Positions 16,366-64,000 of a stretch of DNA of 64,000 bases are shown piece after piece (the first letter of the stretch is position 1; each line of letters starts with the position of its first letter). Location of the stretch: positions 400,606 through 464,605 of IMG/VR virus record IMGVR_UViG_3300023174_000033, one strand, 5' to 3'. The notes beneath the pieces are model-generated. The model was not told the DNA's origin. It saw only the letters and a program-made list of their open reading frames with translations, and searched no databases. The position numbers and the translations under genes are program-made.

Positions 16366-17064
16366 TCAAATATAATCTTCCTCTCTAGCGACCCTAGAAT
16401 CAATTGATTTTCTCAATGAAGAATAATCCACCCAACCATTATTATTAGAAACAAGAATATCGTGACAGAATAATTGGGGCCATGTTGCAAAGGATTTTCT
16501 TTGCTGCTGAATGTTGGTAACAAAATGTCTATCAATTTCCATAGGGAATGATTCATTATATAAATCCACCATTTCCCGCATCAATGTAGGACTGGGTGAG
16601 TAAGAATAAAGTCCCCATAAGTTTTTAGAACTAATCAAGTTAGGAGCAAAGTGTTGTCCATCAATTACACCATAACTCCACATTGAACAATCGTCAGTCA
16701 ATGGAATCCAACCCAAATAAAGTAAATCATAGTCCTCAGGTATTTGTTGTGAGAACACTGAGAATAGTTCTTGTATATTTTTGTGTGGTTTTACATCATC
16801 TTCTAAAATTAGGATTCTTTTGAAACCTCTTGATAACGCATCATTGTAAATCGAAAGGTGTGAAATTGAACAGGCAACGTAATTTTGTGTGGTGAAGTTA
16901 GAGTTGTCTAATTTTTTCCATAAATGGTTTATGACTTGACCATCACAAGCATCAAAAAATTCAAAATCGATTCCAACTTTACCCAATCTTTCTGTAATTA
17001 AGGACCTTCTATCTGAATTCCTTTTCAAAGAAAGAACGTAAATCTTATCAAAATATTCGTTCAT
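16366..17064 (-). CDS. Glycosyltransferase family 25
   Basis: IYVLSL...DRR, FFDACDG, ACSISH, ILEDD, LLYLG. Confidence 0.85.
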   Translation of the reverse strand: MNEYFDKIYVLSLKRNSDRRSLITERLGKVGIDFEFFDACDGQVINHLWKKLDNSNFTTQNYVACSISHLSIYNDALSRGFKRILILEDDVKPHKNIQELFSVFSQQIPEDYDLLYLGWIPLTDDCSMWSYGVIDGQHFAPNLISSKNLWGLYSYSPSPTLMREMVDLYNESFPMEIDRHFVTNIQQQRKSFATWPQLFCHDILVSNNNGWVDYSSLRKSIDSRVAREEDYI

Positions 17065-17116
17065 ATTATCATTTATATTATTAAACTATAAAATGTTAAG
17101 TGAGTATAACATTATT

Positions 17117-18157
17117 ATGAATATTGAACTACAATACTTAGAACTCCTTAAAGATATATTAGAAAATGGTTGTTCAAAAGGTGATAGAACTGGAACAGGA
17201 ACTATCTCAGTCTTTGGAAGACAAATCAGGCACAAAATGTCAGAAGGATTTCCACTTCTCACAACTAAAAAAATGTATTTCAAAGGGGTTATTACTGAAC
17301 TTCTGTGGTTTTTGCGCGGAGATACAAATATTAAATATCTTTTGGACAATGATTGTCATATCTGGGATGGTGATGCTTGGGCTAACTATTCCAAAAAAGT
17401 GATTGCAAACAATTTACAACTTATTCCTGCAACGGATTTACCCAAAACAAAAGAACAATTCATTGAAAAAATCAAAACTGATCAGGATTTCGCTAATACG
17501 TGGGGTGAATTGGGTAAAGTTTATGGACATGGTTGGCGTAATTGGAATGATAGTATTGACCAAATAGCAAACCTAATCAAAGATCTTAAGACAAATCCAG
17601 ACTCTCGTAGACTTATGGTATCCGCCTGGAATCCCTCAGATTTACCAAATCAAGTTTTACCACCTTGTCATTATGGGTTTCAAGTTTATACAAGGGAATT
17701 AAGCCTTCCTGAAAGAATGGAACTTTGGGAAAAACTTCCTAATAAAGATGTTATGGATTTTCCTATTGGCCAATTAACAGATGAACAATATCATAAAGTT
17801 TTAACAGATATTGGCGTACCTGAAAGATCTATATCTTTAATGTGGTCACAAAGATCGATTGATAGTTTGCTCGGCTTGCCGTTTAATATAGCTTCTTATG
17901 CCACACTATTAGAAATTTTAGCAAAAGAAGTTAATATGGTACCAGATGAACTTATTGGAAATCTTGGTGATTGTCACATTTATAGTAACCACATTGAACA
18001 AGTAAAAGAACAGATTTCAAGAACACCATATAAATTACCAACCCTAAAATTTGAAGTTACAAATCTACTTGAAAATTTAATGGATTGGAAACCATCAGAT
18101 TTTTCAATCTTAAATTATGAATCTCACCCAGCTATAAAAGCTCCTCTGAGTAACTAA
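17117..18157 (+). CDS. thyA: Thymidylate synthase
   Basis: DRTGTGT, FPLLTTKK, ELLWFLRG, DSRR, LPPCH, QRSID..LGLPFNIASY, HIYSNH. Likely start is MNIELQY. Confidence 0.95.
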   Translation: MNIELQYLELLKDILENGCSKGDRTGTGTISVFGRQIRHKMSEGFPLLTTKKMYFKGVITELLWFLRGDTNIKYLLDNDCHIWDGDAWANYSKKVIANNLQLIPATDLPKTKEQFIEKIKTDQDFANTWGELGKVYGHGWRNWNDSIDQIANLIKDLKTNPDSRRLMVSAWNPSDLPNQVLPPCHYGFQVYTRELSLPERMELWEKLPNKDVMDFPIGQLTDEQYHKVLTDIGVPERSISLMWSQRSIDSLLGLPFNIASYATLLEILAKEVNMVPDELIGNLGDCHIYSNHIEQVKEQISRTPYKLPTLKFEVTNLLENLMDWKPSDFSILNYESHPAIKAPLSN

Positions 18158-18159
18158 AA

Positions 18160-20792: not shown

Positions 20793-23657
20793 TTAATAGT
20801 TGTAGAACAAAAATAAATTTATTGCTGGATTATTTACACCAGTAGCACCTATTGGACCTTGATTTCCTTGTATACCAGTTGGTCCTTGAACTCCTTGTGG
20901 TCCACCAGCAGGACCAGTAGCCCCTTGTGGCCCAATAATACCATCTATTTTAGAAATTGTAATCCTTGAGTTTGGTTCATTTTGTAACCATCCAGAACCG
21001 TTTATTGTAACAGTACCAGCTTGGTCAGAATTTAAATAAGCTCTTATATCAAAGTAATCATTTTGAGCAAGTGTTATGATGAAAGAAAACATCACAGGTT
21101 GTCCATAACTATCACTCAATAAAATACTATTTGACGAATACCTATTATTTGAGTTTGTACTTTGACCATTTTTTACACCATATACCTGTAATGATGTTGC
21201 AAAATCATTAGCACCAAAAGTGGAAATAAAACCAGAAACAGCTACTGTGATAGTAGATGTGTTTATGTTTGTAAATGAATAAGAAGCTCCACTATAAGTT
21301 ACACCCAGAGATCCAATAGTATTTGATGTATCTATGTTTGGCCAAGGTATTATCCCCTCTGTATTGGGTGATATTGATGTGGCATTTGTTTGGTCTCCAA
21401 ATCTACCTATACTTGCAAAACTTGTTCCTGCAGTTGGACCTTGAACACCTATAGCTCCTTGTGGTCCAGTATTTCCTTGTAGACCAGTTACACCTTGTGG
21501 ACCAGTTACACCTTGGACTCCTTGAAAACCTTGAGGACCTTGCAGACCTTGAAATCCTTGTGGACCAGTTGTACCAGTTCCAGCACTAACTATAAATAAT
21601 GCTAAGTTATTATTATTAGAAAAGTTATGGGTTGCACTTAATAAACTAACTTTCACCTCAACATAACCAGTTTGTATAGAAGCATCCGTAGTCACTACCC
21701 ATTTTTGATAATTATTTGAATTTCCTTGGTCCTGTAAGATTAATATATCATTAACTTTTATCAAAGCCAATATAAAATCTATATCTATATTATCATTTGT
21801 TATATGTGATATATTTAGTTGTGTTGCTGATGTCTGTGTAGCATTATCCCATAGAATATATTGACTACCAGGGTTACCACTTGTTAATGTTGTTTTGGCC
21901 TTATATAAGAAAGTATTGGTTGAACCACCAGCTGGACCTTGGTCACCTTGTGGACCTTGGTCTCCTTGAAATCCTTGTGGTCCATCAAAACCCTGAGGTC
22001 CCATATCTCCTTGTGGACCTTGGTCTCCTTGAAATCCTTGTGGTCCATCAAAACCTTGCGGACCATCAAATCCTTGCGGACCATCAAATCCTTGCGGACC
22101 ATCAAATCCTTGCGGACCATCAAATCCTTGCGGACCTGGATCACCCTGTGGACCTGGATCACCCTGTGGACCTGGATCACCCTGTGGACCTGGATCGCCC
22201 TGTGGACCTGGATCGCCCTGTGGACCTGGATCGCCCTGTGGACCTGGATCGCCCTGTGGACCTGGATCACCCTGTGGACCTGTGTTACCTTGAACACCCT
22301 GGAATCCTTGTGGACCAGTATTACCTTGAAAACCCTGAGGTCCAGTAAATCCTTGTGAACCAGTAAGTCCTTGATTCCCCTGTGGACCTTGTAAACCTTG
22401 GAATCCTTGGAATCCTTGTGGACCTGTAAATCCCTGAGGTCCTTCTATACCAATAGACAATGGTACAAAAATCATATCGTGTCCATTAGTAAATGAATAA
22501 CCACCATTAACATAAGTAACTGGTATTGAAACATAACTATTAGGTGTAATACTAGTTGTCCCACTAACTGTCCATTTTTGATAGTTATTTGAGTTATTCT
22601 CATCTTGGAGTATTAAACTATCACCAGTTTTAATCAATGCTAAAAATACATCTATATCTACACCATCTCTTGTTAAGTGAGAAACATATAATATAGTTGA
22701 GCTTATTTGCGTGGCATTATTCCACACAATCTGTGAGTTATTTGGTGGAGGTGATTGTGTATTTGTTCTAGCATTATATTTGTAATAAGATACTGATACA
22801 CCATCAGCACCAGCAGCACCAGTTCCACCTTGAATACCTTGTACACCTTGAAATCCTTGTGGGCCTGTATAACCTTGAAATCCTTGTACACCTTGAAATC
22901 CTTGTGGGCCTGTATAACCTTGAAATCCTTGTGGACCAGTAGTTCCCTGACTACCAGTTGAACCTTGATTTCCAGTAGTTCCCTGACTACCAGTTGAACC
23001 TTGAGGACCAGTATTACCTTGAGCACCAGTACCACCAAAAGCACCCCCTTGAATACCTTGAAATCCTTGAGGACCAGTATTACCTTGGTTTCCAGTACCT
23101 CCACCAAGTGGTCCCTGAGCACCAGTATTTCCCTGAGGACCAGTATTACCTTGATTACCAGTACCACCACCTAAACCACCTTGAACACCCTGTGGTCCAG
23201 TATAACCTTGAAATCCTTGTGGACCTTGGATTCCTTGTACACCAGTAAAACCTTGGGGTCCCTCTGTGCCGGCACCTGTTATGACAAGACCACTGGTGGT
23301 GGTAGCAAAAATCAGTGTATAATCATCAGTACTATTATGTGTTAAAGTATATGTTGTTATTTCTTGGAAACTACCATCCAATACTTGAACTACCGGATAA
23401 TATCCAAAACTATGTGTTATTGTTAATGTATCAGAAGAACTAAAAGTGCTATTTAAAATGGAGGGAACCCCACCAGATCCTTGTGGACCTTGTTGACCTT
23501 GTGATCCAGTCTCACCATTAGCCCCTATAACACCATTTCCCCCAGAAATTTCCAAAAGATTTCCATCACCATCATAAAATTGACCATCGATATATTGGAC
23601 CATCACTGGCAATTTTTCGAAGGTTAATTGAAATATTTTATTTGGTAAATCTGCCAA
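20793..23657 (-). CDS. Collagen-like fibre protein with two repeated globular inserts
   Basis: Long (Gly-X-Y)n blocks separated by two similar domains (WNNATQ...NNYQKW and WDNATQ...NNYQKW). TTG start, AATATATA at 23682-23675. Confidence 0.9.
21930..22290 (-). repeat. 18-nt coding tandem repeats (GPQGDP x ~8, GPQGFD x ~5)
   Basis: Units such as TGTGGACCTGGATC(A/G)CCC at ~22131-22280. Confidence 0.9.
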
Positions 23658-38903: not shown

Positions 38904-38950
38904 TTAAGATTATTTTATTTTTTAGTTATATATAAAAACAATATTTGGGT

Positions 38951-41117: not shown

Positions 41118-41153
41118 AAAAATGGGTGAAGTTTAAGATTTCACCCATTTTTT
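41118..41153. terminator. Intrinsic terminator
   Basis: AAAATGGGTGAA-N7-TTTCACCCATTTT. Confidence 0.75.
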
Positions 41154-41182
41154 CTTTGTACTTTTCCAAGATCCTTAAAAAA

Positions 41183-41350: not shown

Positions 41351-41353
41351 AAC

Positions 41354-41737: not shown

Positions 41738-41739
41738 AA

Positions 41740-41772
41740 TAAAAAAAACCCTCCTTTTTAGGGAGGGCTTTG
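41740..41772. terminator. Intrinsic terminator
   Basis: AAAACCCTCC-TTTTTAG-GGAGGGCTTT. Confidence 0.75.
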
Positions 41773-41775
41773 ACT

Positions 41776-43215: not shown

Positions 43216-43593
43216 ATGGAGGAAAGGAATAAAATAATGATAGTTGACGAGTCGGAAACTATTTCATTAATCACTAGCAAACTATTTGAATTTCAACACT
43301 GGAATGTAACAAAAGCAATCAGTGGTGAAATGGCTCTAGAATTTATACAAAATGAAGATTTTGATGTGATTCTTATGGATATAAATCTACCAGGAATGAC
43401 TGGAATAGAGTGTTGTCATCTAATAAGAAAAATGGAAGATAAAAGAAAATCTAAAACCCCCATCTTTGCGGTTACTGGAAATGATTTAAATTTAACAGAA
43501 AAGGAATATAAAGATAGGGGATTTAGTGAATTTTTTGAAAAACCAACTAACTTTCAACTACTAATAGATAAACTTAAAAAGATTCTGGACTAA
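43216..43593 (+). CDS. Stand-alone response-regulator receiver domain
   Basis: IMIVDE, DVILMDINLPGMTG, AVTG, EKP: all receiver landmarks. AATATATA at 43204-43211. Confidence 0.9.
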   Translation: MEERNKIMIVDESETISLITSKLFEFQHWNVTKAISGEMALEFIQNEDFDVILMDINLPGMTGIECCHLIRKMEDKRKSKTPIFAVTGNDLNLTEKEYKDRGFSEFFEKPTNFQLLIDKLKKILD

Positions 43594-47369: not shown

Positions 47370-48110
47370 ATGGACCCGTTTAGTGAGTCATTTGGTTTTG
47401 GTGAATATAAATCACAAGCAATAGATTTATTAAAAACTACCATCGAAATTTTAAATGAATTCGAAATACCAAACATGCTAATATCCGGCACTTTACTTGG
47501 ATATATCAGACACAATGATTTTATACCTTGGGATGATGACATAGACTTACTTGTTGATTCTTCAATCCTAAGAAAACTAGGTAAGATTGCTGAAAAATAT
47601 GATAACATTAATATTTTTTACAAAAATAAATATGATGCTATTAAATTCTGTTTTGATTTTGGAAAACCCATAAGTGATAAATCTTGGGAAATGTCAATAA
47701 TAGATGGTAAAATTCAAAGAAAATCAAAACTTAATTTTCCATTTGTAGATTTATTTATCTATGAATCTGGTTACGGGACTCATATTTGTGGACAAGAACA
47801 ACATATCGAAATTGATGGTGAAATTAGAAAAATGTTTATGCCCTTTTCTGGTCCTTGTGATAGGTGTTTTAGATTCATAAAATCGGATGAATTAGTTTTT
47901 TTTCACAACGATTGGAAGAAAAAGAACTTTTTCCCTCTACAAGAAGTAGATTTTTTAGGAATAAAATGTAATATACCTAAAAATCCCCACCATTTTTTAA
48001 AAAAAAATTACGATGGGGATTATATGAAAGTAATTGAGTCAAGAAACTACGACCATAAAAACAACTTAAAAGTAGAAAATATAACTAAAAAACCTTATGT
48101 TAGAAATTGA
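47370..48110 (+). CDS. licD: LicD-family (fukutin-like) phosphotransferase
   Basis: ISGTLLGYIRHNDFIPWDDDIDL, VDLF, NIPKNP..FL...Y. Confidence 0.85.
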   Translation: MDPFSESFGFGEYKSQAIDLLKTTIEILNEFEIPNMLISGTLLGYIRHNDFIPWDDDIDLLVDSSILRKLGKIAEKYDNINIFYKNKYDAIKFCFDFGKPISDKSWEMSIIDGKIQRKSKLNFPFVDLFIYESGYGTHICGQEQHIEIDGEIRKMFMPFSGPCDRCFRFIKSDELVFFHNDWKKKNFFPLQEVDFLGIKCNIPKNPHHFLKKNYDGDYMKVIESRNYDHKNNLKVENITKKPYVRN

Positions 48111-49869
48111 AGAATTAAAAACACATTTGCCGACTGGTGTAGATGCAAAGATTATGCAGTATGAGGAAAATGCTACAAACATCTCCGATGATAAAATTGA
48201 TTTTCCTAAATTATTGGATGGCACACAAACTACCATACTCATAAATATGGAAAGACATACTGAGAGATATCATGTAAGTTTGGAACAATTAAAAAAACTA
48301 TCAATACAAAATTTTGTACACCTTAAAGGAACTGATGGTAAAATTAAATCTCAGTTGGAACAGGATCTAACTTACATCTTGGGGTTTATCAAACAATTCA
48401 ATGATAAGGTAGTTAGTAATCAAATAGAAATAAATGATTTCTCAGAAGTAAATAATCAAGGTGTAAATCTACAAGATGGACCACTTGGCTGTTATTGTTC
48501 ACATCTTAGAGCAATGATTTATGGTTACTTATCTGGTAGTGATTACACTATAATTTGTGAAGATGATATTTCTATTACAAACACAAAAAATATTGAGGAG
48601 TATATACCAAAAATTCCAAATGATTGGGATGTTATTTTCTTGAACTCAAGACCCAAAAATGTTTTACATGACGAACCTTATTATAAATTCATTGATGAAT
48701 TCCATTCTGGTCACTTTTATATTATCAAAAACAAAGCTCTACCTACCATATTTAGTGGTATGTACCCGATGAACGACCAAGTAGATGTTCTACTTTCTTT
48801 CTTACACAAGAAATTGAATATGTATAACATACCAGATACTGTTTATCAAAAGAACTTAGAAACCAATACCCAAAACAATCTTGATATTATTTTTAGTTCA
48901 CCTAACTATATTCCAGTAACAGATGCTTTAAACAAATCAGAAGAAATATTAAATCACTATGCTAATAAAATTCTTCCTGATAACACAGACCAAAATAGAT
49001 TGATTGTAAAGCATTTGATGTATGATATGATTTACAATTTTATACTAACTAAAGGCATTAATAACGAACCAGATCCCAACATAGAAGACTATGTTTTTGA
49101 TAATCCCCATATTGGAAAATGGAGATATACTAAGTTGGAAAAATTTGTTGGATTTTTCTTACAATGTACGAAAAAAGGAATTAACCCAAAGTTAGCTGGT
49201 CAAGGTTTAACAAATGCACTGTTATTTACTTTAAATAAGTTCACTGAATTACATGATACTGATGGAGATATTAAAGCTTATGGATTTGGATCGACTGCTC
49301 ATACCTACAAAGTTGGTAATGATTTGTTAATCAAAAGATATAATAAAAAATTGAGGTGGGCTACTGAAGGTCATGATGACCCCAAAAAAATTATGAATAA
49401 GGAAATAGAACTTTTGGAAAAATTAAAAAATGTAAAATCGGTTCCGAAAATAGTTGACTATGACAATAGAGATATCATTATGGAATATAGGGGGGAATCT
49501 ATCTATAATGATTTTAACTTACCTACTGATTGGAAGGATCAAATAACAAATATATTTTCTGAACTTACTAATAATGGTGTATTTTATCCAGAGTTTAGGT
49601 TGCAGAATATCCTTGTATTAGATGGTAAGATTAGTTTTGTTGATTTTGGTATGGCTGAGTTTAGGGATAAATGTGATAACGCTATCAATCTCGAAAAGTT
49701 TATTAAGTATTTGAGTTTACTTGAGGATAAGTTTAAGATTGTAATTGATTTAGATGCTAGACAAAGGTTGATTTCAACTTTTCTAAAAAATGTTAATATG
49801 CCAACGCCGACCATAGACCAGAAGTTTTCGGAAGGTATTGAACCATTGTTTGGTAATGACTTTTTTTAG
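48097..49869 (+). CDS. GT25 glycosyltransferase fused to a C-terminal kinase-like domain
   Basis: LINMERHTER, GCYCSH, ICEDD. Then GFGSTAH, LIKRY, IIMEYRG, YPEFRLQN, FVDFG. Confidence 0.8.
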   Translation: MLEIEELKTHLPTGVDAKIMQYEENATNISDDKIDFPKLLDGTQTTILINMERHTERYHVSLEQLKKLSIQNFVHLKGTDGKIKSQLEQDLTYILGFIKQFNDKVVSNQIEINDFSEVNNQGVNLQDGPLGCYCSHLRAMIYGYLSGSDYTIICEDDISITNTKNIEEYIPKIPNDWDVIFLNSRPKNVLHDEPYYKFIDEFHSGHFYIIKNKALPTIFSGMYPMNDQVDVLLSFLHKKLNMYNIPDTVYQKNLETNTQNNLDIIFSSPNYIPVTDALNKSEEILNHYANKILPDNTDQNRLIVKHLMYDMIYNFILTKGINNEPDPNIEDYVFDNPHIGKWRYTKLEKFVGFFLQCTKKGINPKLAGQGLTNALLFTLNKFTELHDTDGDIKAYGFGSTAHTYKVGNDLLIKRYNKKLRWATEGHDDPKKIMNKEIELLEKLKNVKSVPKIVDYDNRDIIMEYRGESIYNDFNLPTDWKDQITNIFSELTNNGVFYPEFRLQNILVLDGKISFVDFGMAEFRDKCDNAINLEKFIKYLSLLEDKFKIVIDLDARQRLISTFLKNVNMPTPTIDQKFSEGIEPLFGNDFF

Positions 49870-49892: not shown

Positions 49893-50435
49893 ATGAACAA
49901 TTGTTTCAAACAAATTGATGTTAAAATTAAATTCAATGGGTCATTATCAGATATAAAATCTGACTTACACATGACTCATGACAAGTGGCAAAAATATGGA
50001 CTCACTCTAAAGAAAAAAGAAAATTATGAGGCTTCAATTGCAACTACATACGAGGTAACAGATCAAGTAAAATCATATGTACTCTCAAAAATCCCAACTG
50101 AATTACTTCAATTAGAAACACCAAAAGTTTGGTATCTTGAAGTTACTGGAACAAATAAAAGTACAACAATGGTTCCACCACACATTGACACTTTTAGGAT
50201 ATGTACAATAAATTTTTATATCAATACCAATGGCGAGACAACTAAATTTTACGAATATAAATCCGGAACTATTATAGATGAAATTGGTGAGTTTTGTGCA
50301 AAAGACAATGAATGTTTTATCCTAAACACCACCGTACCACATTCGGTAAAACTTATGTCAGAAAAAAAAAGATCGGTAATTGGAGCTTCGTTCATAAAGA
50401 CCCCATATGAAAAAGTAATAACTTATTTCTCTTAA
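49893..50435 (-). CDS. 2OG-Fe(II) dioxygenase-like protein
   Basis: PPHIDT...INFY...VPHSV...R...ASF facial-triad pattern. Confidence 0.7.
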
Positions 50436-51040
50436 AAAATATCTTCCAAGGTAGTTATCTTCCTCAAGTATCTATAATGTCCACCTATCAATTCATATTT
50501 CATATCAAACCTACTAACAACAGGTAAAATTTCACACTCCTCACCTGTTTGAATATAGGTGTTAAAAATGTGTTTGAATAAATCAAAGTTAGTTATTTGT
50601 GGAGAACAAAGCTCAATGAAATCATTTCGGTTTGGTATAACGTATCCAACATCTTTCAATTGAGCTAGGCCGTTTAGCATCGGTAAATAAAATTGAGAGT
50701 GTAGATTTTTATTTGAACTTTCTAAAAGCCTTTCCACCATTGACTCTGTGATATAAGGTCTAGCAGCATCATGAATTAGAATGTTTGAACACTTGTCAAT
50801 GTTGGATAGTGCAACTTTTATAGATTCCAATCTTGAATCGTTATCTGTTAGCAAAACGTCACCATATATTTTTAAGTAACAATCTGAATTAGCAACGATA
50901 ATCACATCGTCAAGATATTTGGAAAATAGATCAATTGAATGTTGAACCATAGGTTTATCACCTATAGGATATAATTGTTTTGGAATTTCCGAATTAAATC
51001 GAGTTGATTTACCAGCGGCTAATATAACACCTATGTTCAT
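50432..51040 (-). CDS. IspD/TarI-like cytidylyltransferase
   Basis: ILAAGKSTRF...PKQL, SRLESI, LIHDAARP, KITTLED. Confidence 0.8.
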   Translation of the reverse strand: MNIGVILAAGKSTRFNSEIPKQLYPIGDKPMVQHSIDLFSKYLDDVIIVANSDCYLKIYGDVLLTDNDSRLESIKVALSNIDKCSNILIHDAARPYITESMVERLLESSNKNLHSQFYLPMLNGLAQLKDVGYVIPNRNDFIELCSPQITNFDLFKHIFNTYIQTGEECEILPVVSRFDMKYELIGGHYRYLRKITTLEDIF

Positions 51041-51528
51041 TAAAATTTATATAGTTTTACTGACCAATCCTTCCAATCATTTTTAGAAGTCAATTGGGCT
51101 CTATCGTATTTATCCCACTTTTTCAAGTCAATATCCAACCAATCAGTAATTTCTCTATTTGCTTTATCAAGATTCAAATTCCGATTGAATGCTTTAGCAA
51201 AACAATAAGTAATATAACCTTTAGCTCTGTGCTCATAATCTTTTGCATCAAAGCCAAGTTTTTTAGCTTTATTGATTACAGTGATTTCACAATCATATTC
51301 ATATTCATATACTTTCATACCTTTATGAACCTCTGCCCGAGCAATGTGGGTTATTTCGTGAAGGCAAATAAGGAATCTATTTAGAGTTGTTGGATCGGGT
51401 ATTTCTACGAGTTTTTCTTTAATGAAAGCAACTCCACAATCACCCTTTCTCCATTTCCTAACTTGGATACCATAGAAACGAAGTTCATCATCAACGTATT
51501 TTTTTGCCCACTCTGAATTGAATTCCAT
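51040..51528 (-). CDS. HExxH zinc-metallopeptidase-like protein
   Basis: CLHEITH...YEYE. Start MEFNS (51528), 4 nt after TATCTTTG at 51540-51533. Confidence 0.7.
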   Translation of the reverse strand: MEFNSEWAKKYVDDELRFYGIQVRKWRKGDCGVAFIKEKLVEIPDPTTLNRFLICLHEITHIARAEVHKGMKVYEYEYDCEITVINKAKKLGFDAKDYEHRAKGYITYCFAKAFNRNLNLDKANREITDWLDIDLKKWDKYDRAQLTSKNDWKDWSVKLYKF

Positions 51529-51591
51529 AACACAAAGATACAACTTTTTTTTGATTTGTCAATACAATAAGAACAAAAAAAAATTAGTTAT

Positions 51592-54810: not shown

Positions 54811-56574
54811 ATGAAATTACTCGATGGAAAAAAGGCTTCTAAAATAATACTTTCTGAATTAAAATATAAAATAAAAAAAATTACTGAAAGAAATAATGAA
54901 ATAAAAATACCAAAAATTGCGATAGTTCTGGTCGGTGATAATCCTAGCAGTATGTCTTATATGAGGTCAAAACTAAAGATATCATCGGAAAATAATTTCA
55001 ATGCTCAATTGTTTTTTTATTCTGACTTTATAAAAGAAGATGAATTGCTAAACGAAATTGATAAGTTAAACAATTCATCAGATATTGATGGGGTCATAGT
55101 TGAACTACCCCTACCAAATCAAATATCCCAAGAAAAAATAATTAACCGAATTGATCCACAAAAAGATATTGATGGCTTCAATCCGATTAACTTTGGCAAA
55201 ATGTCTCTTGGCCAAAAAGCACACAGACCCGCTACAGCTTATGGTATTCTAAAACTTCTGGAATTTTACAAAATTTATACAACGAGCAAACACATTGTTG
55301 TTATTGGAAGATCAAATATAGTTGGAAAACCTATATCTATAATGTTAGGAAATGACTTTGATATTGGTAGAGCGACAGTAACTTCATGTGATATAAACAC
55401 ACCAATTGAACTATTAAGAGAAGAATCAAGAAGAGCTGATATTATAATCGTAGCAGTTGGTAAAGTAAATCTTTTAAAAGAAGATATGGTAAAGGATGGT
55501 GCCATAGTTATTGACGTTGGCATAAATATGGTTGGTGATACAATCGTAGGAGATTGTGATTTTGAAAACGTATCTCCGAAATGTGAATGGATCACACCTG
55601 TTCCAGGTGGTGTTGGCCCAATGACAATTTGTGCACTTCTTTTGAACACATTTGCAACTTGGTATGAAAAAAATAAAATACTTGAAGAAAAGATAAATTC
55701 AATTGACTACACAGTTAAACTGATTGAGAGTCTAGACCAAAGTTTCTCACCCACCACGGATGGAAAAAAACTAATCGGAACCTACGATCATAATAGAATT
55801 CCAGGTGATAATGAAGTAATTCATGTCATAGGTGATTATCCAGTCGGAAAGCATTCACTAATAACAGAAAATCCAAGTTTCAGACATTATAAATGGGCAA
55901 TGAAGTTCAGCTATGATTCATTTGAGGGTAATACCTGTTGGGATGGAATTGATGATATTTGGATCATCAACGATACCGTTAGACAAGATAGACTTTATGA
56001 TACCCTGAAAGAATTCAAGAAAATTGGGATACCGCTCAATAAAGTAAAAATACAACCAGCCGAATTCAATAGTTCAACCGGTAATAATTACGCAAATAAA
56101 CTAATTGGATGTTTCAAATCACACCTTAAAATATTTGAACAATATCAAGATAAAGATTTTAAACATTTATTAATTTTTGAAGATGATTTTACTTTTTCCG
56201 ATCCGATTGAAGAGTCACAAAGACAAATTAGAGAATTTGTCTCAAGAGACTATGAATATGATGTGATGTTATTCTCAACAAGTTGTATCGGTCAAATAAT
56301 TCCAATTGATGATTTGATAAGTGAATCAAAACAACCTTGTACAACAACTGCTGGTTATATGGTCTCAAAGAAGGGACTTGAAAAAATTATACCACTTTGG
56401 CACGAAGGAATAAACGGTCTACTTGGATGGTGTGATTTCAATCAATTTGCTTGTGATAAATATTGGACAAAAATTCAGAAAGATGGACAAATGTTTTCTT
56501 TTAACGCAAAAATTGGATACCAAAGACCAAGCTATAGTACAACTCTTGGCAATTTGAGTTACAATTTAGATTAA
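54811..56574 (+). CDS. folD: FolD (methylene-THF dehydrogenase/cyclohydrolase) fused to a GT25 domain
   Basis: LLDGK, KDIDGF, VIGRSNIVGKP, IDVGIN, TPVPGGVGPMT in the first ~290 aa. IGCFKSH, IFEDD, TTAGYMVS, QRPSYS after. One uninterrupted frame. Confidence 0.85.
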   Translation: MKLLDGKKASKIILSELKYKIKKITERNNEIKIPKIAIVLVGDNPSSMSYMRSKLKISSENNFNAQLFFYSDFIKEDELLNEIDKLNNSSDIDGVIVELPLPNQISQEKIINRIDPQKDIDGFNPINFGKMSLGQKAHRPATAYGILKLLEFYKIYTTSKHIVVIGRSNIVGKPISIMLGNDFDIGRATVTSCDINTPIELLREESRRADIIIVAVGKVNLLKEDMVKDGAIVIDVGINMVGDTIVGDCDFENVSPKCEWITPVPGGVGPMTICALLLNTFATWYEKNKILEEKINSIDYTVKLIESLDQSFSPTTDGKKLIGTYDHNRIPGDNEVIHVIGDYPVGKHSLITENPSFRHYKWAMKFSYDSFEGNTCWDGIDDIWIINDTVRQDRLYDTLKEFKKIGIPLNKVKIQPAEFNSSTGNNYANKLIGCFKSHLKIFEQYQDKDFKHLLIFEDDFTFSDPIEESQRQIREFVSRDYEYDVMLFSTSCIGQIIPIDDLISESKQPCTTTAGYMVSKKGLEKIIPLWHEGINGLLGWCDFNQFACDKYWTKIQKDGQMFSFNAKIGYQRPSYSTTLGNLSYNLD

Positions 56575-57031: not shown

Positions 57032-57682
57032 ATGATTGATTTTGATGTTAAAACACCAACTCTTCTTTGCGAATTAATGCAAAAATATGGAAGTGATAAA
57101 GGTGGTGAGAATTTAGAAAAAACTTGGCATAATTACACACCCGTTTACAATTCCCTTTTTGAGAATATCAGGTTTGATAAATTAAAAGTATTTGAGCTTG
57201 GCCTTGGAACTAATAATACTCAGGTACCATCAAATATGGGTAAAGATGGTAAACCAGGAGCTTCTTTATACGCTTGGGCAGACTTTTTTCCAAACTCCCA
57301 AATCTTCGGAGCAGATATTGATAAGGAAATTCTATTCAACACTGAAAGAATCAAAACTTATTTTTGTGACCAAACTAACCCATTTGAAATTAAAAAAATG
57401 TGGAACGATGCTGACCTCTATGGACAATTTGATATCATACTTGAGGACGGTTTACATGAATTTGCGGCTAACGTCACATTCTTTGAAAACAGTATTCACA
57501 AACTATCAAAGAATGGATATTTTATAATTGAGGACATAGCAAACAAGGAAATTCCTCTTTTCAAAATTAAAATTGAGGAGTGGAAAAGTAAATATAATAA
57601 TATCAGTTTTGATCTCCTAATTCTCCCGACTTCAGTAAATTGGATTGATAATAATTTACTTATTTGTAAAAAATTGTTCTAG
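57032..57682 (+). CDS. Class I SAM-dependent methyltransferase (sugar O-methyltransferase-like)
   Basis: YGSDKG, HNYT..Y, VFELGLG, GADID, CDQT, IILEDGLH, IIED. Confidence 0.8.
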   Translation: MIDFDVKTPTLLCELMQKYGSDKGGENLEKTWHNYTPVYNSLFENIRFDKLKVFELGLGTNNTQVPSNMGKDGKPGASLYAWADFFPNSQIFGADIDKEILFNTERIKTYFCDQTNPFEIKKMWNDADLYGQFDIILEDGLHEFAANVTFFENSIHKLSKNGYFIIEDIANKEIPLFKIKIEEWKSKYNNISFDLLILPTSVNWIDNNLLICKKLF

Positions 57683-58367: not shown

Positions 58368-59096
58368 ATGGCAAAGAAATTTGAAATATCAGATACCATT
58401 GACCTCTATTTCAAAGAAATTGAGAAGGTATCATCACCTCTTACTAAAAAAGAGGAACACGCACTTGCTGTAAAAATACAAGCAGGTGATACAAATGCTT
58501 TGAACGAATTGGTTTTACACAACCTAAAATTCGTTGTATTACTCGCAAACAAATTTATTGGAATGGGTGTTAATATTGATGATTTAATCCAAGAAGGTAA
58601 TGCTGGTTTGATTGAAGCCGCTAAAAGATTCACATCCGATAAAGACACAAGATTTATAACATATGCTCAATTTTGGATAAGAAAATATCTTAATGAATCA
58701 ATTGTGGAATATGGCAGAACAGTAAAACTACCACACAATAAAGAGTATGATATTTATAAACAAAAAGTTGCTGGAGAATGGGAGGGAAATTTACACAATG
58801 TGGAATTGGACAAAACCATGGGTGATGAAAATGAAGATACTTTAGGCGACCACATATTATCTGAAGAATTTTCAGATCCATTTCAAAACGAAGAACAAAA
58901 TAATCAACTAATTTTTTTCTTAAACAAATTAACACCCGAGGAGATAAAAATAACAAAACTATTTTATGGAATTGAACAAACTTCATCATTATCAACAAGA
59001 GAGGTTGGAAATATAGTTGGAATAGAAGAGTCAAAGGTTAATAGAATTCTAAAAATTGCAAGAAGCAAAATGAGAAAAGCAATTACAAAAAAATGA
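58368..59096 (+). CDS. RNA polymerase sigma-70-family factor (regions 1.2, 2 and 4)
   Basis: IDLYFKEI...LT.KEE..LA, ELVLHNLKFVV, DDLIQEG..GL.EAA.RF, RFITYA.FWIR, C-terminal HTH. Confidence 0.9.
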   Translation: MAKKFEISDTIDLYFKEIEKVSSPLTKKEEHALAVKIQAGDTNALNELVLHNLKFVVLLANKFIGMGVNIDDLIQEGNAGLIEAAKRFTSDKDTRFITYAQFWIRKYLNESIVEYGRTVKLPHNKEYDIYKQKVAGEWEGNLHNVELDKTMGDENEDTLGDHILSEEFSDPFQNEEQNNQLIFFLNKLTPEEIKITKLFYGIEQTSSLSTREVGNIVGIEESKVNRILKIARSKMRKAITKK

Positions 59097-60992: not shown

Positions 60993-61196
60993 CGTGTAGG
61001 TTTGATAAACCCACAAGCGTCTCACAAAGTTGTCTTTGTATGTGAGGACAAAGGTTAGAGAAAAAGAATATTTGGGTGTTGTGAATTAACATCAAAAAAG
61101 GATACAACTCCGACTTATCATCGGATTGTGGAAACTCCTTCATAAACCATCCAGAGGGTTCTCAATAACTTATTTATTTTTGATAATATAATTTTT

Positions 61197-62168
61197 ATGA
61201 TAGTAGTCACTGGCGCTTTGGGTTTTATAGCCTCTTGCCTTATTTCAAAACTAAACACTGATGGGTTCAACGAAATTGTAGCAGTTGATGATTTTTCACC
61301 ATCAACCCTTTTCAGAAAAAAAAATCTTAATGATAAACAAATTTCAAAGTATATCAATAGAGAAGAATTCCCCAAATGGTTAGAAGATAATCAAATAAAT
61401 GTTGATTTTATTTTTCATTTGGGAGCTAGAACAGACACTATGGAGAAATCCAAAGATATTTTTGATAAGTTTAATTTTAACTACTCTAAAGAACTATACA
61501 GTATCTGCACAAAATATCAAATTCCAATTCTATATGCTTCATCAGCAGCGACTTATGGTTCGGGAGAACTTGGATATGTAGATTATGAACCACTTATTTC
61601 AGAATTAAAACCACTGAATCCTTATGGTGAGTCAAAACAAAATTTTGACATTTGGATACTTGAACAAGAAAATAAACCTTATTTTTGGACCGGTCTTAAA
61701 TTCTTCAACGTTTATGGTCCTAATGAGTACCACAAAGGTAAAATGGCTTCGGTTATTTACCACTCATATAAACAAATAAAGGAAAACCAAAAACTTTGCC
61801 TATTTCAATCTCACAAAGAGGGTATTGAGAACGGACACCAAAAAAGAGATTTTATCTATGTTAAAGACGTGGTTGATGTTATGATTTGGTTTTTCAACAA
61901 GAGGATAAATTCAGGTATTTATAATCTTGGAAGCGGACAGGCAAGAACTTTTTTAGATGTAGCTAAAAGTGTTTTCAACTCTTTAGATATAGAAGAGAAT
62001 ATTGAATTCACACCAACACCTATTGAAATCCGAGATTCTTATCAATATTTCACACAAGCTAATATGGATAAAATCAGGTCTGCCGGATATGACAGACCCT
62101 TTACTAGTTTAGAGGATGGCATTGAAGATTACGTTAAGAATTATTTAAATTTAGAAAAAATTCTATAA
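61197..62168 (+). CDS. rfaD: ADP-L-glycero-D-manno-heptose 6-epimerase
   Basis: VTGALGFIAS, FHLGARTDT, YASSAATYG, YGESK, KFFNVYGPNEYHKGKMASV, RDFIYVKD. Confidence 0.9.
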   Translation: MIVVTGALGFIASCLISKLNTDGFNEIVAVDDFSPSTLFRKKNLNDKQISKYINREEFPKWLEDNQINVDFIFHLGARTDTMEKSKDIFDKFNFNYSKELYSICTKYQIPILYASSAATYGSGELGYVDYEPLISELKPLNPYGESKQNFDIWILEQENKPYFWTGLKFFNVYGPNEYHKGKMASVIYHSYKQIKENQKLCLFQSHKEGIENGHQKRDFIYVKDVVDVMIWFFNKRINSGIYNLGSGQARTFLDVAKSVFNSLDIEENIEFTPTPIEIRDSYQYFTQANMDKIRSAGYDRPFTSLEDGIEDYVKNYLNLEKIL

Positions 62169-64000
62169 TCTTACATACTCAACTGCATTTGTAGTAGCAT
62201 TTAAATAAAGATATGTACTACCAACTGGATAACCATTTAATTGTGTTATTGCTATAAGTGCTGCCGACCTATTAGAAAATTCTCGAATAGATTGATTTGA
62301 TATAGCAAAAACATTATCATTTCCGGTATACCCAGTCATACTAAAAGTTTGATATCCAGCATTTGGTCCTATAAAAACACCCCCATCTTTTGTATTATTT
62401 TTACCAGCATCTTGCCCGAGTTGTAAAACATCATCACCAGTATTATTAAAACCAGCGTTTTTTCCAAGTTGTAAAACATTGTTTCCGCTATTTTGAGACC
62501 CAGCATAGTAACCTATTTGAACCACATCATTACCACCCCCACCAGCACCAACGCCTATCTGAACTGAATTGTCGCCTGTGAAAACACCCCCACCAGCACC
62601 AGCGCCTATCTGAATAGCAGATTGCCCAACATTAAAGCCTCCAGCAGAATCACCAATTTGAACTACACCACCAGCACTATTATTCTGACCAGCACCATAA
62701 CCCAGTTGAATTGAATTTCCTCCGGTATTATTGTACCCAGCATTGTAACCTATTTGAACAACATAATTACCAGTATTACCAGTAAACCCCATGCCCGAGC
62801 CAGCACCAAATCCCAATTGAATAGAATAGCTGCCCATATTACGTTGTCCAGCACTTTCACCTATCTGAATCACCCCATTACCCATATTAAGATATCCAGC
62901 AGATTCAGCTATCTGAACTACACCATTACCACTATTAGCCAGACCAGCACCATTACCTAATTGAACTGCTTGATTACCGGCATTACTTGAACCAGCAGCA
63001 TAACCCAGTTGAACTGAATTGTCACCGGTATTATTTGAACCAGCAGCATAACCCAGTTGAACTGAATTGTCACCGGTATTATAAAAACCAGCTTGATATC
63101 CTATTTGAACAACATTATAACCAGTATTACCACTAAGCCCCATGCCCGATCCAGCACCAAATCCCAATTGAATAGAATAGCTGCCCGTATTATTTTGACC
63201 AGCAGATTCACCTATCTGAATCACTCCATTACCAGTTTGATTACCACCAGCGCCATTCCCAATACACACAACTCCAGTTCCAGTAGCGGTATTTAAATAT
63301 TCTGTGATTGAAATAAATGATTTACTAATATCCATTTGTAAAACAAATCCATTAATAGTATTTCCACCATCATAACCAGCTTGCAAACTAGCAGGACCTA
63401 TCGGACCTTGATATCCTTGATCACCTTGGAAACCCTGTGGGCCGTCAGGACCTTGATCACCCTGGAAACCTTGTGGGCCATCTGGGCCTTGATCACCTTG
63501 GAAACCTTGTGGGCCATCTGGGCCTTGGTCGCCTTGGAAACCTTGTGGGCCGTCAGGACCTTGGTCGCCTTGGAAACCTTGTGGGCCATCTGGACCTTGG
63601 TCACCCTGGAAACCTTGTGGGCCATCTGGACCTTGGTCACCCTGGAAACCTTGTGGGCCATCTGGACCTTGGTCACCCTGGAAACCTTGTGGGCCATCTG
63701 GGCCTTGGTCGCCTTGGAAACCTTGTGGGCCATCTGGACCTTGATCACCTTGGAAACCTTGTGGGCCATCTGGACCTTGATCACCTTGGAAACCTTGTGG
63801 GCCATCTGGACCTTGGTCGCCTTGGAAACCTTGTGGGCCATCTGGGCCTTGGTCGCCCTGGAAACCTTGTGGGCCGTCAGGTCCTTGGTCACCCTGGAAA
63901 CCTTGTGGGCCATCTGGGCCTTGGTCGCCTTGGAAACCTTGTGGGCCATCTGGACCTTGGTCACCCTGGAAACCTTGTGGGCCGTCAGGGCCTTGGTCAC
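62163..64000 (-). CDS. Collagen-like fibre with C-terminal YadA-head-like repeats, partial (5' end off the window edge)
   Basis: The [12 protein letters not shown] frame runs without a stop from 64000 into track ORF 62163..63386, which carries ~14-aa VQ(I/L)GxxAGxxNxG repeats. Confidence 0.9.
63420..64000 (-). repeat. 36-nt coding tandem repeat ([12 protein letters not shown] x ~16)
   Basis: Head-to-tail units with synonymous variation and no spacers. Confidence 0.9.

Follow-up and report, generated by a model that had tools for sequence, protein, structure and literature searches.

Genes of the window

The DNA analysed here, referred to as the window, is the final 64 kb of the 464,605 bp genome (~98% complete) of a freshwater (lake) megaphage, whose host is probably a member of the Cytophagales. 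A sequence-only reading had proposed that this phage may hydroxylate Pro and glycosylate Thr on its own collagen-like fibres. The elements that it listed (two collagen-like genes, three GT25 domains, RfaD, and an HxD...H oxygenase) were all found where it had placed them. The genes considered are:

16366..17064, minus strand: GT25 #1, stand-alone, 232 aa, EDD at residue 88 (Pfam PF01755, 77 bits; PHROG glucosyltransferase)
20793..23657, minus strand: collagen-like protein E, 954 aa (Pfam Collagen, 175.9 bits)
47370..48110, plus strand: LicD-family phospho-alcohol transferase, 246 aa (Pfam LicD, 66.6 bits vs cutoff 22.6)
48097..49869, plus strand: GT25 #2 with a C-terminal protein-kinase-like domain, 590 aa (Pfam GT25, 40.1 bits, and a weak RIO1 match; NCBIfam Bud32, 5.5e-8)
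49893..50435, plus strand: P0001, small Fe(II)/2-oxoglutarate (2OG) oxygenase, 180 aa (HxD...H...R)
50432..51040, minus strand: IspD/TarI-type cytidylyltransferase, 202 aa (Pfam IspD, 67.9 bits vs cutoff 27)
51040..51543, minus strand: ORF without annotation, 167 aa, directly upstream of the IspD-type gene on the same strand (1-nt overlap)
54811..56574, plus strand: FolD-GT25 #3 fusion, 587 aa (FolD, residues 1-288; GT25, residues about 400-587, EDD at 457)
57032..57682, plus strand: weak class-I SAM-methyltransferase-like ORF, 216 aa (Pfam Methyltransf_31, 24.5 bits, below the cutoff of 27; PHROG methyltransferase, 3.9e-5)
61197..62168, plus strand: ADP-L-glycero-D-manno-heptose 6-epimerase, RfaD/HldD (NCBIfam TIGR02197 equivalog, 367.5 vs 274.6 bits)
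62163..64000, minus strand: 3' part of the gene for collagen-like protein F (Pfam Collagen, 100.1 bits for the ORF at 62163-63998)

Collagen-like fibre genes

Besides the two collagen-like ORFs of the window, four more lie outside it, giving six genome-wide. They belong to a paralogous modular fibre family in which GPQ-rich triple-helix segments alternate with shared spacers, some about 120 aa and others about 60 aa long; these spacers are common to the collagen genes of this genome and to relatives that bear the enzyme module described below. One member, collagen B, adjoins virion-structural genes. Collagen E has 148 Gly-X-Y triplets in 9 segments with globular spacers between them, an internal spacer of 114 aa being present in duplicate, and its C-terminal part matches tail-fibre PHROGs, chiefly through the repeats. 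Collagen F combines a repeated 12-residue unit with a 408-aa non-collagen C-terminal domain that had no PHROG match. Its gene carries on at genome positions 1-345, placing the N-terminus at the start of the record. Because the same repeat is present at both record ends and the terminal collagen gene resumes at the start, we conclude that the assembly broke within this repeat.

In collagen E, X is mostly Pro, while Y is Gln in 82, Thr in 28, and Lys in none of the 148 triplets. Many Thr had been noted at Y, but the commonest Y residue is Gln. Over the 1294 triplets of the genome, Y is Gln in 59%, Thr in 17%, Pro in 1.3%, and Lys in 0.4%, and X is Pro in 33%. Since Lys is nearly absent and Pro sits at X rather than Y, the canonical sites of collagen hydroxylation and of hydroxylysine glycosylation are missing. 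As it reads, a Pro-at-X, Gln-at-Y collagen does not call for hydroxylation, and with so little Lys, hydroxylysine chemistry of the collagen type is not supported. Neither a signal peptide nor a TM segment was detected in any collagen protein, nor a TM segment in any GT25, so both sets would be cytoplasmic.

GT25 enzymes and RfaD

The genome encodes four GT25 domains, three in the window and one outside it (Pfam GT25 cutoff, 24 bits), as well as about seven GT2 enzymes. The catalytic EDD motif is intact in all four. GT25 #1 is divergent from ThyA, with a gap of 28 nt, and its similarity to Mimivirus R655, bacterial GT25, and COLGALT1 is weak and about equal (E 1e-6 to 4e-5); of 24 candidate hosts, just 4 have a gene like it, with identities of at most 41%. 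GT25 #3 is joined to a full FolD (THF_DHG_CYH_C, 189.9 bits; THF_DHG_CYH, 104.4 bits; NCBIfam FolD, 297 bits; GT25, 40.5 bits), whereas relatives encode FolD separately, a few genes upstream of LicD. GT25 #4 adjoins a head-tail adaptor gene, and its relatives, like cyanophage GT25s, reside in multi-GT polysaccharide-type clusters within auxiliary-gene regions. None of the phage GT25s has the COLGALT architecture or a specific affinity to COLGALT.

RfaD is 60-65% identical over its full length to Cytophagales enzymes and, by sequence, is an LPS-core gene of host origin. The genome has no other SDR epimerase, and GmhA and GT9 were not found in it. It does touch the second collagen gene, as had been noted, with the 3' ends overlapping by 6 nt; however, the two genes are convergent and so do not form an operon. 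The 216-aa ORF, previously likened to a sugar methyltransferase, gave a generic SAM-methyltransferase match below threshold and no NCBIfam match, leaving the sugar link unsupported.

A conserved viral module of LicD, GT25-kinase, and cytidylyltransferase

The 3' end of the LicD gene overlaps the GT25-kinase gene by 14 nt. The order of the module is LicD, GT25-kinase fusion, (oxygenase), IspD-type cytidylyltransferase, with both GT25 #2 and the oxygenase inside it. The kinase-like domain contains the invariant Lys, the alphaC-Glu, E-x4-N, and DFG, and in distant relatives it matches Pkinase or RIO1; its predicted structure has a pLDDT of 35, which we counted against the explanation favoured below. 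We found 469 homologs of the GT25-kinase, and among the matches listed all 120 were at least 71% identical. The cytidylyltransferase scored under all NCBIfam equivalog cutoffs, and its product would be a CDP-activated polyol or alcohol phosphate. The 167-aa ORF had no Pfam, PHROG, or NCBIfam match; at its place, three relatives (L005, L129, and L130) carry an unannotated 273-aa gene as its positional counterpart.

All 5 close relatives and 18 of the 22 distant ones have LicD next to the GT25-kinase gene, and the IspD-type gene is the conserved third member. In 3 of 46 representatives, LicD and GT25-kinase form one protein, and in G037 they share an 816-aa open frame. The module is kept across hundreds of viral contigs, sometimes as one fused protein, and is deeply conserved among megaphages, separate from collagen. 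When a sample of 201 Cytophagales genomes was searched with single-protein queries, LicD gave no matches and the GT25-kinase one weak match to GT25 only. A collection of cultured phages yielded no LicD homolog by tblastn and 12 GT25 matches, none of which reached the kinase-like part.

The module and the other GT25s are located among early-type nucleotide-metabolism genes (MazG-like, FolD, DHFR, ThyA, RNR) rather than late structural genes. This location was also counted against the favoured explanation. Nucleotide-metabolism genes are, moreover, dispersed across the whole region, some of them adjoining collagen genes.

The oxygenase accompanies the module

P0001 had no Pfam or PHROG match. 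Nevertheless, H97, D99, H150, and R160 are invariant in its family of about 60 homologs, and its AlphaFold model (pLDDT 77.5) gave VIA matches to Fe(II)/2OG oxygenases with Z of 8-10.5, so that the predicted fold is a true 2OG/Fe(II)-oxygenase fold. Several matches are tied: ALKBH6 (nominally the top), the collagen prolyl 4-hydroxylase vCPH of chlorovirus PBCV-1 (Z 10.2 over 140 residues), a proline 3-hydroxylase, and many others. The nearest atlas clusters are 100% viral. P0001 occurs at 4 of the 5 close module loci and on none of 22 distant module-bearing contigs, including those adjacent to collagen genes, and where present it always accompanies the LicD/GT25/IspD module. It is an addition by this clade and not part of the module core. 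Hydroxylation of fibre Pro by this enzyme, as had been suggested, is not supported, given the position of Pro in the triplets, the association of P0001 with the glycan module, and the absence of any P4H-type Pfam match in the protein or elsewhere in the genome.

Collagen and the glycan enzymes

Of 27 module loci, 5 have a collagen gene at most 10 kb to either side of the module, which is not above the 31% background in this genome. No collagen repeats were found in any of the 11 viral records that carry a relative of GT25 #4 or the oxygenase, nor in 3 further related records. Two 99%-complete jumbo phages with a collagen-family spacer domain both lack LicD, and one lacks any GT25. All four GT25s of this phage are at most 12.3 kb from a collagen gene (P from 0.01 to 0.16 according to the statistic used). 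In some distant relatives, Thr-rich collagen-like genes directly adjoin the GT25-kinase gene; Thr makes up 70-87% of Y in these module-adjacent ORFs versus 17% in this phage, and in L147 such an ORF begins about 30 nt past the GT25-kinase ORF on the same strand. O-glycosylation of Thr in Gly-X-Thr tracts makes chemical sense, but no sequence feature ties the enzymes specifically to collagen. Folding of (Gly-Pro-Thr)10 requires beta-galactosyl-Thr (PMC11923368).

Discussion

The window is best read as a set of co-resident features rather than a single collagen-modification pathway. What stands of that proposal is its parts, the large glycosylation capacity, the oxygenase fold, and the chemical sense of Thr O-glycosylation; Pro hydroxylation, hydroxylysine chemistry, and the link between collagen and the enzymes are not supported. 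We tentatively favour, at somewhat less than an even chance, a virus-specific module that would add a phospho-alcohol-decorated glycan, most likely onto virion proteins, with the collagen fibres as a plausible candidate acceptor.

The main rival, which we consider possible but less probable, is remodelling of the host envelope. In the infected Cytophagales cell, lipid-linked intermediates of LPS core, O-antigen, or capsule would be the targets of the GT25s, of RfaD, and of LicD with the kinase and cytidylyltransferase, on the model of lic1/lic2/lpsA LOS decoration in Haemophilus. If so, the benefit would be a block to superinfection, or progeny kept from adsorbing to debris. The homology-based names GT25 ("LPS biosynthesis"), LicD, and RfaD (an equivalog) all point to LPS/LOS or teichoic-acid cell-envelope decoration, an observation counted against the explanation that we favour. 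The enzymes are soluble and cytoplasmic like LOS-core transferases, their genes sit among early metabolic genes, and GT25 #4 relatives and cyanophage GT25s occupy polysaccharide-type clusters. Furthermore, no heptosyltransferase to partner the host-derived RfaD was found in the phage, so that the RfaD product would be used by enzymes of the host. Surface-modifying auxiliary genes, however, are usually patchy and host-like, whereas this module is nearly without matches in the Cytophagales sample and is kept across distant megaphages whose hosts probably differ; GT25 #1-like genes, too, are scarce and divergent in candidate hosts. Decoration of the cell envelope is nonetheless the usual interpretation of phage GT repertoires in the literature (PMC12801897).

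A pathway dedicated to the collagen-like fibres, along the lines of Mimivirus L230/R699 or animal P4H/COLGALT, is improbable; in it, Pro would be hydroxylated by the oxygenase, and Thr or hydroxylated residues would be glycosylated by the GT25s. Both sets do share one genome, with every GT25 near a collagen gene; the oxygenase fold ties with the chlorovirus enzyme; Thr is enriched at Y beside the module in relatives, L147 included, and (GPT)10 folds only with beta-Gal-Thr (PMC11923368); and the one collagen beta-galactosyltransferase known so far is a GT25 enzyme whose EDD site is the same (PMC12003778). Against this stand the scarcity of Pro and Lys at Y, the lack of a P4H-type match, the absence of the oxygenase from distant module loci even beside collagen genes, the background-level proximity of collagen, the related viral records and spacer-bearing jumbo phages described above, the GT25 architectures, and the convergence of RfaD with its collagen neighbour. 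Less probable still, indeed very unlikely, is DNA hypermodification, in which the oxygenase and/or folate enzymes would hydroxylate a base for decoration by GT25, kinase, and LicD, as in T-even glucosyl-hmC, arabinosyl-5hoC, and TET-linked systems. GT25s adjoin or are fused to ThyA, FolD, the RNR small subunit, and a MazG-like gene, an AlkB-like 2OG oxygenase adjoins the module in two relatives, and ALKBH6 is the nominal top fold match of P0001. Yet the sole ThyA homolog is a canonical thymidylate synthase that scores above an equivalog cutoff, with both the catalytic Cys and the dUMP-specifying Asn in place; searches of the genome for a C5-cytosine methyltransferase and for TET/JBP gave no match (the TET control was uninformative); the oxygenase lies outside the module core; nucleotide-metabolism genes also occur regionwide, including beside collagen genes; and known DNA glycosyltransferases of such systems are GT-B/GT4-like, not GT25 (PMC13326640).

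Haemophilus influenzae decorates its LOS with phosphocholine through the lic1 LicA/LicC/LicD pathway, with GT25 enzymes Lic2A/LpsA and RfaD. The phage has the same enzyme classes (GT25 hexosyltransferase, PK-fold kinase, cytidylyltransferase, LicD transferase, heptose epimerase), but its cytidylyltransferase is IspD/TarI-type rather than LicC-type, its kinase domain is RIO/Pkinase-like and not clearly a choline kinase, and its genes are viral, differently fused, and did not turn up in the candidate host order. The glycosylation enzymes of Bacillus anthracis BclA are not known to be GT25. O-glycosylated Thr in Gly-X-Thr is established for BclA and for Riftia cuticle collagen, and such sugars at Y stabilise the helix of prokaryote-type collagen lacking hydroxyproline (cited in PMC11923368); in the phage, Thr is just 17% of Y and GPQ triplets dominate. 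COLGALT1/GLT25D1 shares with all four phage GT25s the unusual Glu-Asp-Asp Mn2+ motif (PMC12003778), but it has a two-domain GT1+GT2 architecture and a hydroxylysine acceptor, whereas each phage enzyme carries one GT25 domain, which stands by itself or is joined to a kinase-like domain or FolD, and the phage collagens nearly lack Lys. The large lytic cyanomyoviruses S-SSM7 and S-SCSM2R encode numerous GTs, among them GT25 next to GT10/GT11, as well as epimerases and cytidylyltransferases (PMC12801897), and GT25 #4 relatives occupy similar cell-wall-modification clusters; these have no collagen link, nor was a LicD homolog found by tblastn in the cultured-phage collection. PBCV-1 vCPH is likewise a small viral DSBH enzyme with HxD...H, but P0001 lacks the P4H family signature, matches others equally well, and has as genomic partner a glycan module rather than a Pro-rich substrate.

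Mimivirus also combines collagen-like proteins with glycosyltransferases (the L230 lysyl hydroxylase/glucosyltransferase, the R699 glucosyltransferase, and the candidate GT25 R655) in one large virus. R655, whose own activity is unproven (PMC9546862), is the best solved-structure match of GT25 #1, but a weak one (E 1e-6), no better than bacterial GT25. Mimivirus chemistry uses hydroxylysine, while in the phage Lys is rare at Y and searches revealed neither an L230-type nor a P4H-type oxygenase.

For the virus-specific module that we favour, we infer a chemistry, step order, and acceptor from the domain identities, motifs, synteny, fusions, and distribution. In the cytoplasm, the cytidylyltransferase would make a CDP-activated polyol or alcohol phosphate; the inverting GT25, with its intact EDD metal site, would transfer a beta-hexose to a hydroxyl of the acceptor; phosphate or phospho-alcohol would be attached to that sugar by the kinase domain and LicD; and the oxygenase may tailor the product. 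GT25 #1, GT25 #4, and the FolD-GT25 fusion would be additional, independently placed transferases, and RfaD a separate host-derived auxiliary gene supplying ADP-L,D-heptose. Viruses that glycosylate their own surface have a precedent in Mimivirus (PMC9546862, PMC9614988). Because the module is deeply conserved in megaphages and did not turn up in the sampled genomes of the candidate host order, its acceptor is most likely a phage component; virion surface proteins are the leading candidate, and the Thr/Ser-bearing collagen-like fibres may plausibly be among them.

Genome assembly and probable host

The IMG/VR record (464,605 bp, GC ~30%), of which the window covers 400,606-464,605, is rated ~98% complete. 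At least two independent studies of lake and freshwater metagenomes contain near-identical sequence. Although the record is labelled linear, both of its ends bear a collagen repeat coding for the same 12 residues, and one collagen gene spans them (window 62163-64000, beginning at genome 1-345, minus strand). Because of the common end repeat and the end-spanning gene, we deduced that the assembly is circular or circularly permuted and was broken inside a tandem repeat. Every translation used table 11; an alternative genetic code was rejected, since TGA terminates 91 of 416 long ORFs and coding density does not improve when it is taken as a sense codon.

Phage and bacterial hallmarks include a sigma-70 factor, an OmpA-like protein (window 36978-37877), and two proteins with type IX secretion (T9SS) C-terminal sorting domains; outside the window, the genome encodes a head-tail adaptor and a gp32-like protein that binds ssDNA. 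A giant-virus origin, prompted by the low GC and by the presence of both collagen and GT25, was rejected on the sigma-70, gp32-like, head-tail adaptor, and T9SS features and on the host-like ADP-heptose 6-epimerase, RfaD (window 61197-62168). RfaD passes the TIGR02197 equivalog (367.5 vs 274.6 bits) and, across its whole length, shares 60-65% identity with proteins of freshwater Cytophagales (Catalimonadaceae, Spirosoma, Pontibacter, Dyadobacter). Its similarity and the T9SS domains indicate a host within the Cytophagales. The sorting-domain proteins (F5/8 type C and Calx-beta-like) lie with an M43-type metallopeptidase at window 37929-43089 and were apparently built for export via the host type IX system.

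Other features of the genome were also seen. The nucleotide-metabolism set at genome 362000-400605 is unusually broad (adenylosuccinate lyase, RNR small subunit, OMP decarboxylase, ThyA, FolD, MazG-like), and relatives add IMPDH, adenylosuccinate synthetase, DHFR, PRPP synthetase, and the chaperones DnaJ and GrpE. At window 11547-13326, minus strand, three of five consecutive ORFs of ~148 aa are paralogous (31-60% identity), forming a small tandem family. A stand-alone response-regulator receiver domain (window 43216-43593) and a sigma-70 family factor (58368-59096) are encoded near the glycan genes described next.

A LicD-GT25/kinase-cytidylyltransferase module

All the elements listed in an earlier sequence-only reading were found in the window: two collagen-like genes, three GT25 domains, an oxygenase, and RfaD. 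The gene it called sugar-methyltransferase-like gave only a sub-threshold generic match. RfaD, said to abut the second fibre gene, is correctly named; the two genes are convergent, with a 3' overlap of 6 nt. The GT25 gene at window 48097 belongs to a compact module.

Genes of the glycan module and the adjoining oxygenase (window coordinates)
47370-48110, LicD; overlaps the GT25/kinase gene by 14 nt
48097-49869, GT25/kinase fusion (GT25 #2); C-terminal protein-kinase-like domain
49893-50435, 180-aa oxygenase P0001; follows the GT25/kinase gene after a 23-nt gap
50432-51040, strand opposite to LicD, IspD-type cytidylyltransferase; preceded by a 167-aa ORF that has no Pfam, PHROG, or NCBIfam match

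LicD matches PF04991 in two stretches (66.6 bits vs a cutoff of 22.6), while the NCBIfam cholinephosphotransferase Mf1 model gave 65.4 bits, under its cutoff of 225. The cytidylyltransferase reaches the Pfam IspD family level (67.9 vs 27 bits) and not the equivalog level (TIGR00453, 87.4 vs 181.3 bits; NF001183, 51.3 vs 166 bits). The lic1 pathway uses the choline kinase LicA and a LicC-type (NTP_transferase) enzyme; the phage has a generic kinase-like domain and an IspD-type cytidylyltransferase. The kinase-like domain retains the Lys, alphaC-Glu, and DFG, as well as a catalytic loop of the form E-x4-N, with Glu in the place commonly taken by Asp. Among 46 distant multi-domain relatives, 25 match Pkinase, 19 RIO1, and four Choline_kinase, with few APH or LPS-kinase matches. 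A model of the domain (pLDDT 34.7) was set aside.

The gene order is kept on related contigs of 392, 342, 291, and 92 kb, and 18 of another 22 viral contigs have the whole triad at 33-52% identity. We found 469 homologs of the GT25-kinase protein, the 120 listed all being at least 71% identical, and a deep profile search returned 539 representatives of the kinase-like domain. Twenty-four of the 46 multi-domain relatives also carry GT25, three of them LicD in addition, and three carry GT2; in one viral record LicD, GT25, and kinase make up a single frame of 816 aa. Because they are fused in relatives, the LicD, GT25, and kinase activities can be placed in one pathway. Relatives add genes for a UDP-glucose dehydrogenase, a UXS-like epimerase, PRPP synthetase, GT34, an RXYLT1-like glycosyltransferase, and an AlkB-like oxygenase.

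LicD had no match in 201 genomes of the candidate host order, in which the GT25-kinase protein gave one weak match to its GT25 part only; genes like GT25 #1 occur in four of 24 candidate hosts at no more than 41% identity. RfaD is host-like; judged by these comparisons, the module is not. No LicD homolog was found in the cultured-phage collection, and neither a GT9 heptosyltransferase, GmhA, nor a P4H-type oxygenase was found in the phage genome. Collagen-like fibres and glycosyltransferase repertoires are each already known in phages separately. What is new is the compact module, its genes often fused, which is kept in hundreds of environmental megaphage contigs; literature searches on phage collagen, GT25, and phage glycosyltransferases gave no description of it.

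Many of the compared contigs L133-L154 are named as giant-virus MAG (GVMAG) bins. Many of this set carry the triad, and some also share collagen-family and other genes with this phage (seven genes within 21 kb on L147). The GVMAG contigs with the triad may in fact come from megaphages and have been wrongly binned as giant viruses.

GT25 domains of the phage

The genome encodes four GT25 domains, one per protein: GT25 #1 (window 16366-17064), #2, #3 (window 54811-56574), and #4, outside the window. Their PF01755 scores are 77, 40.1, 40.5, and 60.2 bits (cutoff 24), and the partner is the kinase-like domain (#2), FolD (#3), or none. An EDD motif, invariant in the family alignments, lies at residues 88, 155, 457, and 118, respectively; this Glu-Asp-Asp sequence is the defined metal-binding motif of the GT25 catalytic domain (PMC12003778). 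In GT25 #3 a complete FolD (methylene-THF dehydrogenase/cyclohydrolase) is in frame with the GT25 across a linker of ~120 aa; relatives encode FolD on its own, a few genes upstream of LicD. About seven GT2 genes are also present.

Unlike COLGALT/GLT25D, which combines a structural GT1 with a catalytic GT2 domain, the phage enzymes lack this architecture. GT25 #1 matches Mimivirus R655 (E = 1.3e-6), bacterial GT25 (2.2e-5), and COLGALT1 (2.4e-5) to similar degrees; #4 matches bacterial GT25 only, #2 matches none of the three, and #3 reaches COLGALT1 at 0.03. These matches do not suggest that the phage GT25s are closer to COLGALT than to LPS-type GT25.

GT25 #4 lies 3' of the RNR small subunit gene and 5' of the head-tail adaptor, as in a 91%-identical relative. 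Its more distant relatives (39-43% identity) reside in large multi-GT clusters with GT10, GT11, GT47, GT77-like enzymes, FkbM/TylF methyltransferases, and UDP-galactopyranose mutase, a pattern like that of the cultured cyanophage S-SSM7. Two related large phage contigs (L033:1-15222 and L035:4900-17600) have glycan clusters of at least 15 genes, comprising eukaryote-like GT10, GT11, GT47/exostosin, RXYLT1-like, and GT77-like enzymes, FkbM/TylF, and UDP-galactopyranose mutase; they also hold a SIS/transaldolase/GHMP-kinase/nucleotidyltransferase set reminiscent of a pathway to heptose nucleotides.

The adjoining oxygenase

P0001 has no family match in Pfam or PHROG, yet the earlier assignment as an oxygenase held up: H97, D99, H150, and R160 are invariant among ~60 homologs, and the structural model (pLDDT 77.5) matched 47 solved chains at Z of at least 8, nearly all of them 2OG oxygenases (range Z 8-10.5). 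The top matches were tied among ALKBH6, a Burkholderia oxygenase, a chlorovirus collagen prolyl hydroxylase, and proline 3-hydroxylase; Foldseek matches were weaker (TM ~0.4), and a sequence-profile search of the oxygenase family against the PDB returned only noise. The modelled double-stranded beta-helix, the HxD...H motif, and the basic residue for 2OG binding place P0001 in the Fe(II)/2-oxoglutarate oxygenase superfamily. Its gene is present at four of the five close module loci and at none of the 22 distant ones, a distribution that marks the oxygenase as an accessory to the module.

The collagen-like fibre family

The genome has six collagen-like ORFs (A-F), the longest 2849 aa, and 77 PF01391 matches in all. 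The two ORFs in the window (E and F) score 175.9 and 100.1 bits for Gly-X-Y repeats, and the other four 749.9, 564.3, 88.5, and 72.5 bits. A, C, and D share a spacer of ~120 aa, and A-E a unit of ~60 aa, both placed between GPQ-rich segments; the proteins are one paralogous, modular family. No signal peptide or TM segment was found in any of them. Collagen B adjoins a virion-structural, tail-fibre-like protein, and collagen repeats in phages are ordinarily read as fibres. A tblastn search against cultured phages gave a single low-complexity match.

In 1294 pooled triplets, Pro makes up 32.7% of X, while Y is 59% Gln, 17% Thr, 6% Ser, 1.3% Pro, and 0.4% Lys. The near-absence of Lys had been correctly noticed, whereas the prominence given to Thr was misplaced, Gln being dominant. 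Viral collagens generally have KGD as 13% of triplets (PMC11923368), against which Lys-free GPQ collagens look unusual.

ORFs C (2227 aa) and D (525 aa) form one frame interrupted by a single TGA at genome 376482-376484 (L007:14483-14485, outside the window). The TGA replaces the required Gly codon of the repeat (GLE-G-PQ-GDM becomes GLE-stop-PQ-GDM), and the apparent start of D is merely the Met of the following GDM triplet. The TGA would be a readthrough site or else a nonsense mutation, or sequence variant, that interrupts a gene of ~2757 codons. All contigs that cover it end within ~20 nt of it.

Does the module act on collagen?

The sequence-only reading had proposed that the enzymes and fibres form a collagen-modification pathway. 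This proposal is supported in part: the components are present, whereas the link of the enzymes to collagen and prolyl hydroxylation were not supported. COLGALT acts on hydroxylysine, and the phage collagens are nearly Lys-free (0.4% of Y, 0.1% of X), which speaks against this chemistry. The P4H substrate is X-Pro-Gly, with Pro at Y, whereas here Pro is concentrated at X; PF13640 has no match in P0001 or anywhere in the genome. Prolyl hydroxylation of the fibres is thus unlikely on sequence evidence, and a repeat with Pro at X and Gln at Y would not call for it.

Within the genome all four GT25 genes lie no more than 12.3 kb from a collagen gene (permutation P = 0.01-0.16, by statistic), 12.3 kb being the distance for GT25 #2. 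The GT25-rich region is full of nucleotide-metabolism genes, which flank collagen genes too. No collagen ORF was found within 10 kb on either side of the module in four close-clade contigs. Eleven viral records that encode a relative of GT25 #4 or of the oxygenase, one of them with terminal repeats, likewise showed no collagen repeats; the phage's own genome, with its 77 matches, was the positive control.

Five of the 22 distant loci do have collagen-like ORFs nearby, members of the phage's own collagen family with spacers 37-54% identical to those of collagens A-D and with Thr as 70-87% of Y (GYT, GFT, GAT, GPT). On contig L147 such an ORF begins ~30 nt past a 909-aa GT25-kinase ORF on the same strand. 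Because GT25 enzymes are inverting hexosyltransferases, and because a collagen peptide of this type needs beta-galactosylated Thr, the Thr-rich collagen beside the module is suggestive. That peptide, (Gly-Pro-Thr)10, folds solely in the galactosylated form (PMC11923368). Overall, collagen lies near the module at five of 27 loci, which does not exceed the background in this genome, where 31% of equal-sized intervals touch a collagen gene. Furthermore, two 99%-complete jumbo phages have the family spacer domain in (G-T-N/S)n proteins while lacking LicD, and one of them lacks any GT25. We conclude that the association of module and collagen is at the level of the clade and is not demonstrably functional. 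The jumbo-phage proteins (L155:2237-11005 and L156:8174-11137) are up to 2923 aa long, with G-T-N/G-T-S repeats that have Thr at X and no Pro, and perhaps do not form collagen triple helices.

Possible roles of the module

On the evidence the genome is best explained by three separate things: a glycan module intrinsic to the virus, a family of collagen-like fibres, and a heptose epimerase of host derivation. The module would involve a CDP-alcohol donor, a beta-hexose placed on an acceptor, and a phosphate or phospho-alcohol adorning the sugar, with the clade-specific oxygenase as a tailoring enzyme. We tentatively favor virion proteins as the acceptor, and we hold this with less than even confidence. 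Remodelling of the host envelope is a somewhat less probable use of the same chemistry.

A narrower version, in which the module of these freshwater megaphages O-glycosylates Thr (and Ser) at Y of their own collagen-like fibres and adds a phospho-polyol cap, in place of hydroxyproline as a helix-stabilizing or shielding modification, is doubtful; a dedicated pathway of collagen hydroxylation and glycosylation is more doubtful still. Least probable is DNA modification. The arabinosyl- and glucosyltransferases known to act on DNA belong to the GT-B type and are accompanied by ThyA homologs that modify dCMP (PMC13326640). Against modified DNA here, no enzyme of the kinds that make the hydroxylated base in hmC, 5hoC, or TET-linked phage systems was found. 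The sole ThyA of the genome is a canonical thymidylate synthase (350.5 bits against an equivalog cutoff of 325), so that we rejected it as a pyrimidine hydroxymethylase, and no C5-methyltransferase (PF00145) match was found in the genome; nor was a TET/JBP (PF12851) match, a search whose control was uninformative.

On either the virion or the envelope reading, the module offers four defined proteins whose expression and assay need no phage culture. Were it to remodel the host envelope, lytic phages would have in it a system of surface conversion conserved to an unusual degree. If the Thr/Ser reading were true, animal Hyl-Gal-Glc and Bacillus BclA would be joined by a third independently evolved system of collagen glycosylation, the first known from a bacteriophage. 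If the module glycosylates virions, it would extend the self-glycosylation of giant viruses to bacteriophages, with a bearing on host recognition, particle stability, and the detection of environmental phages.
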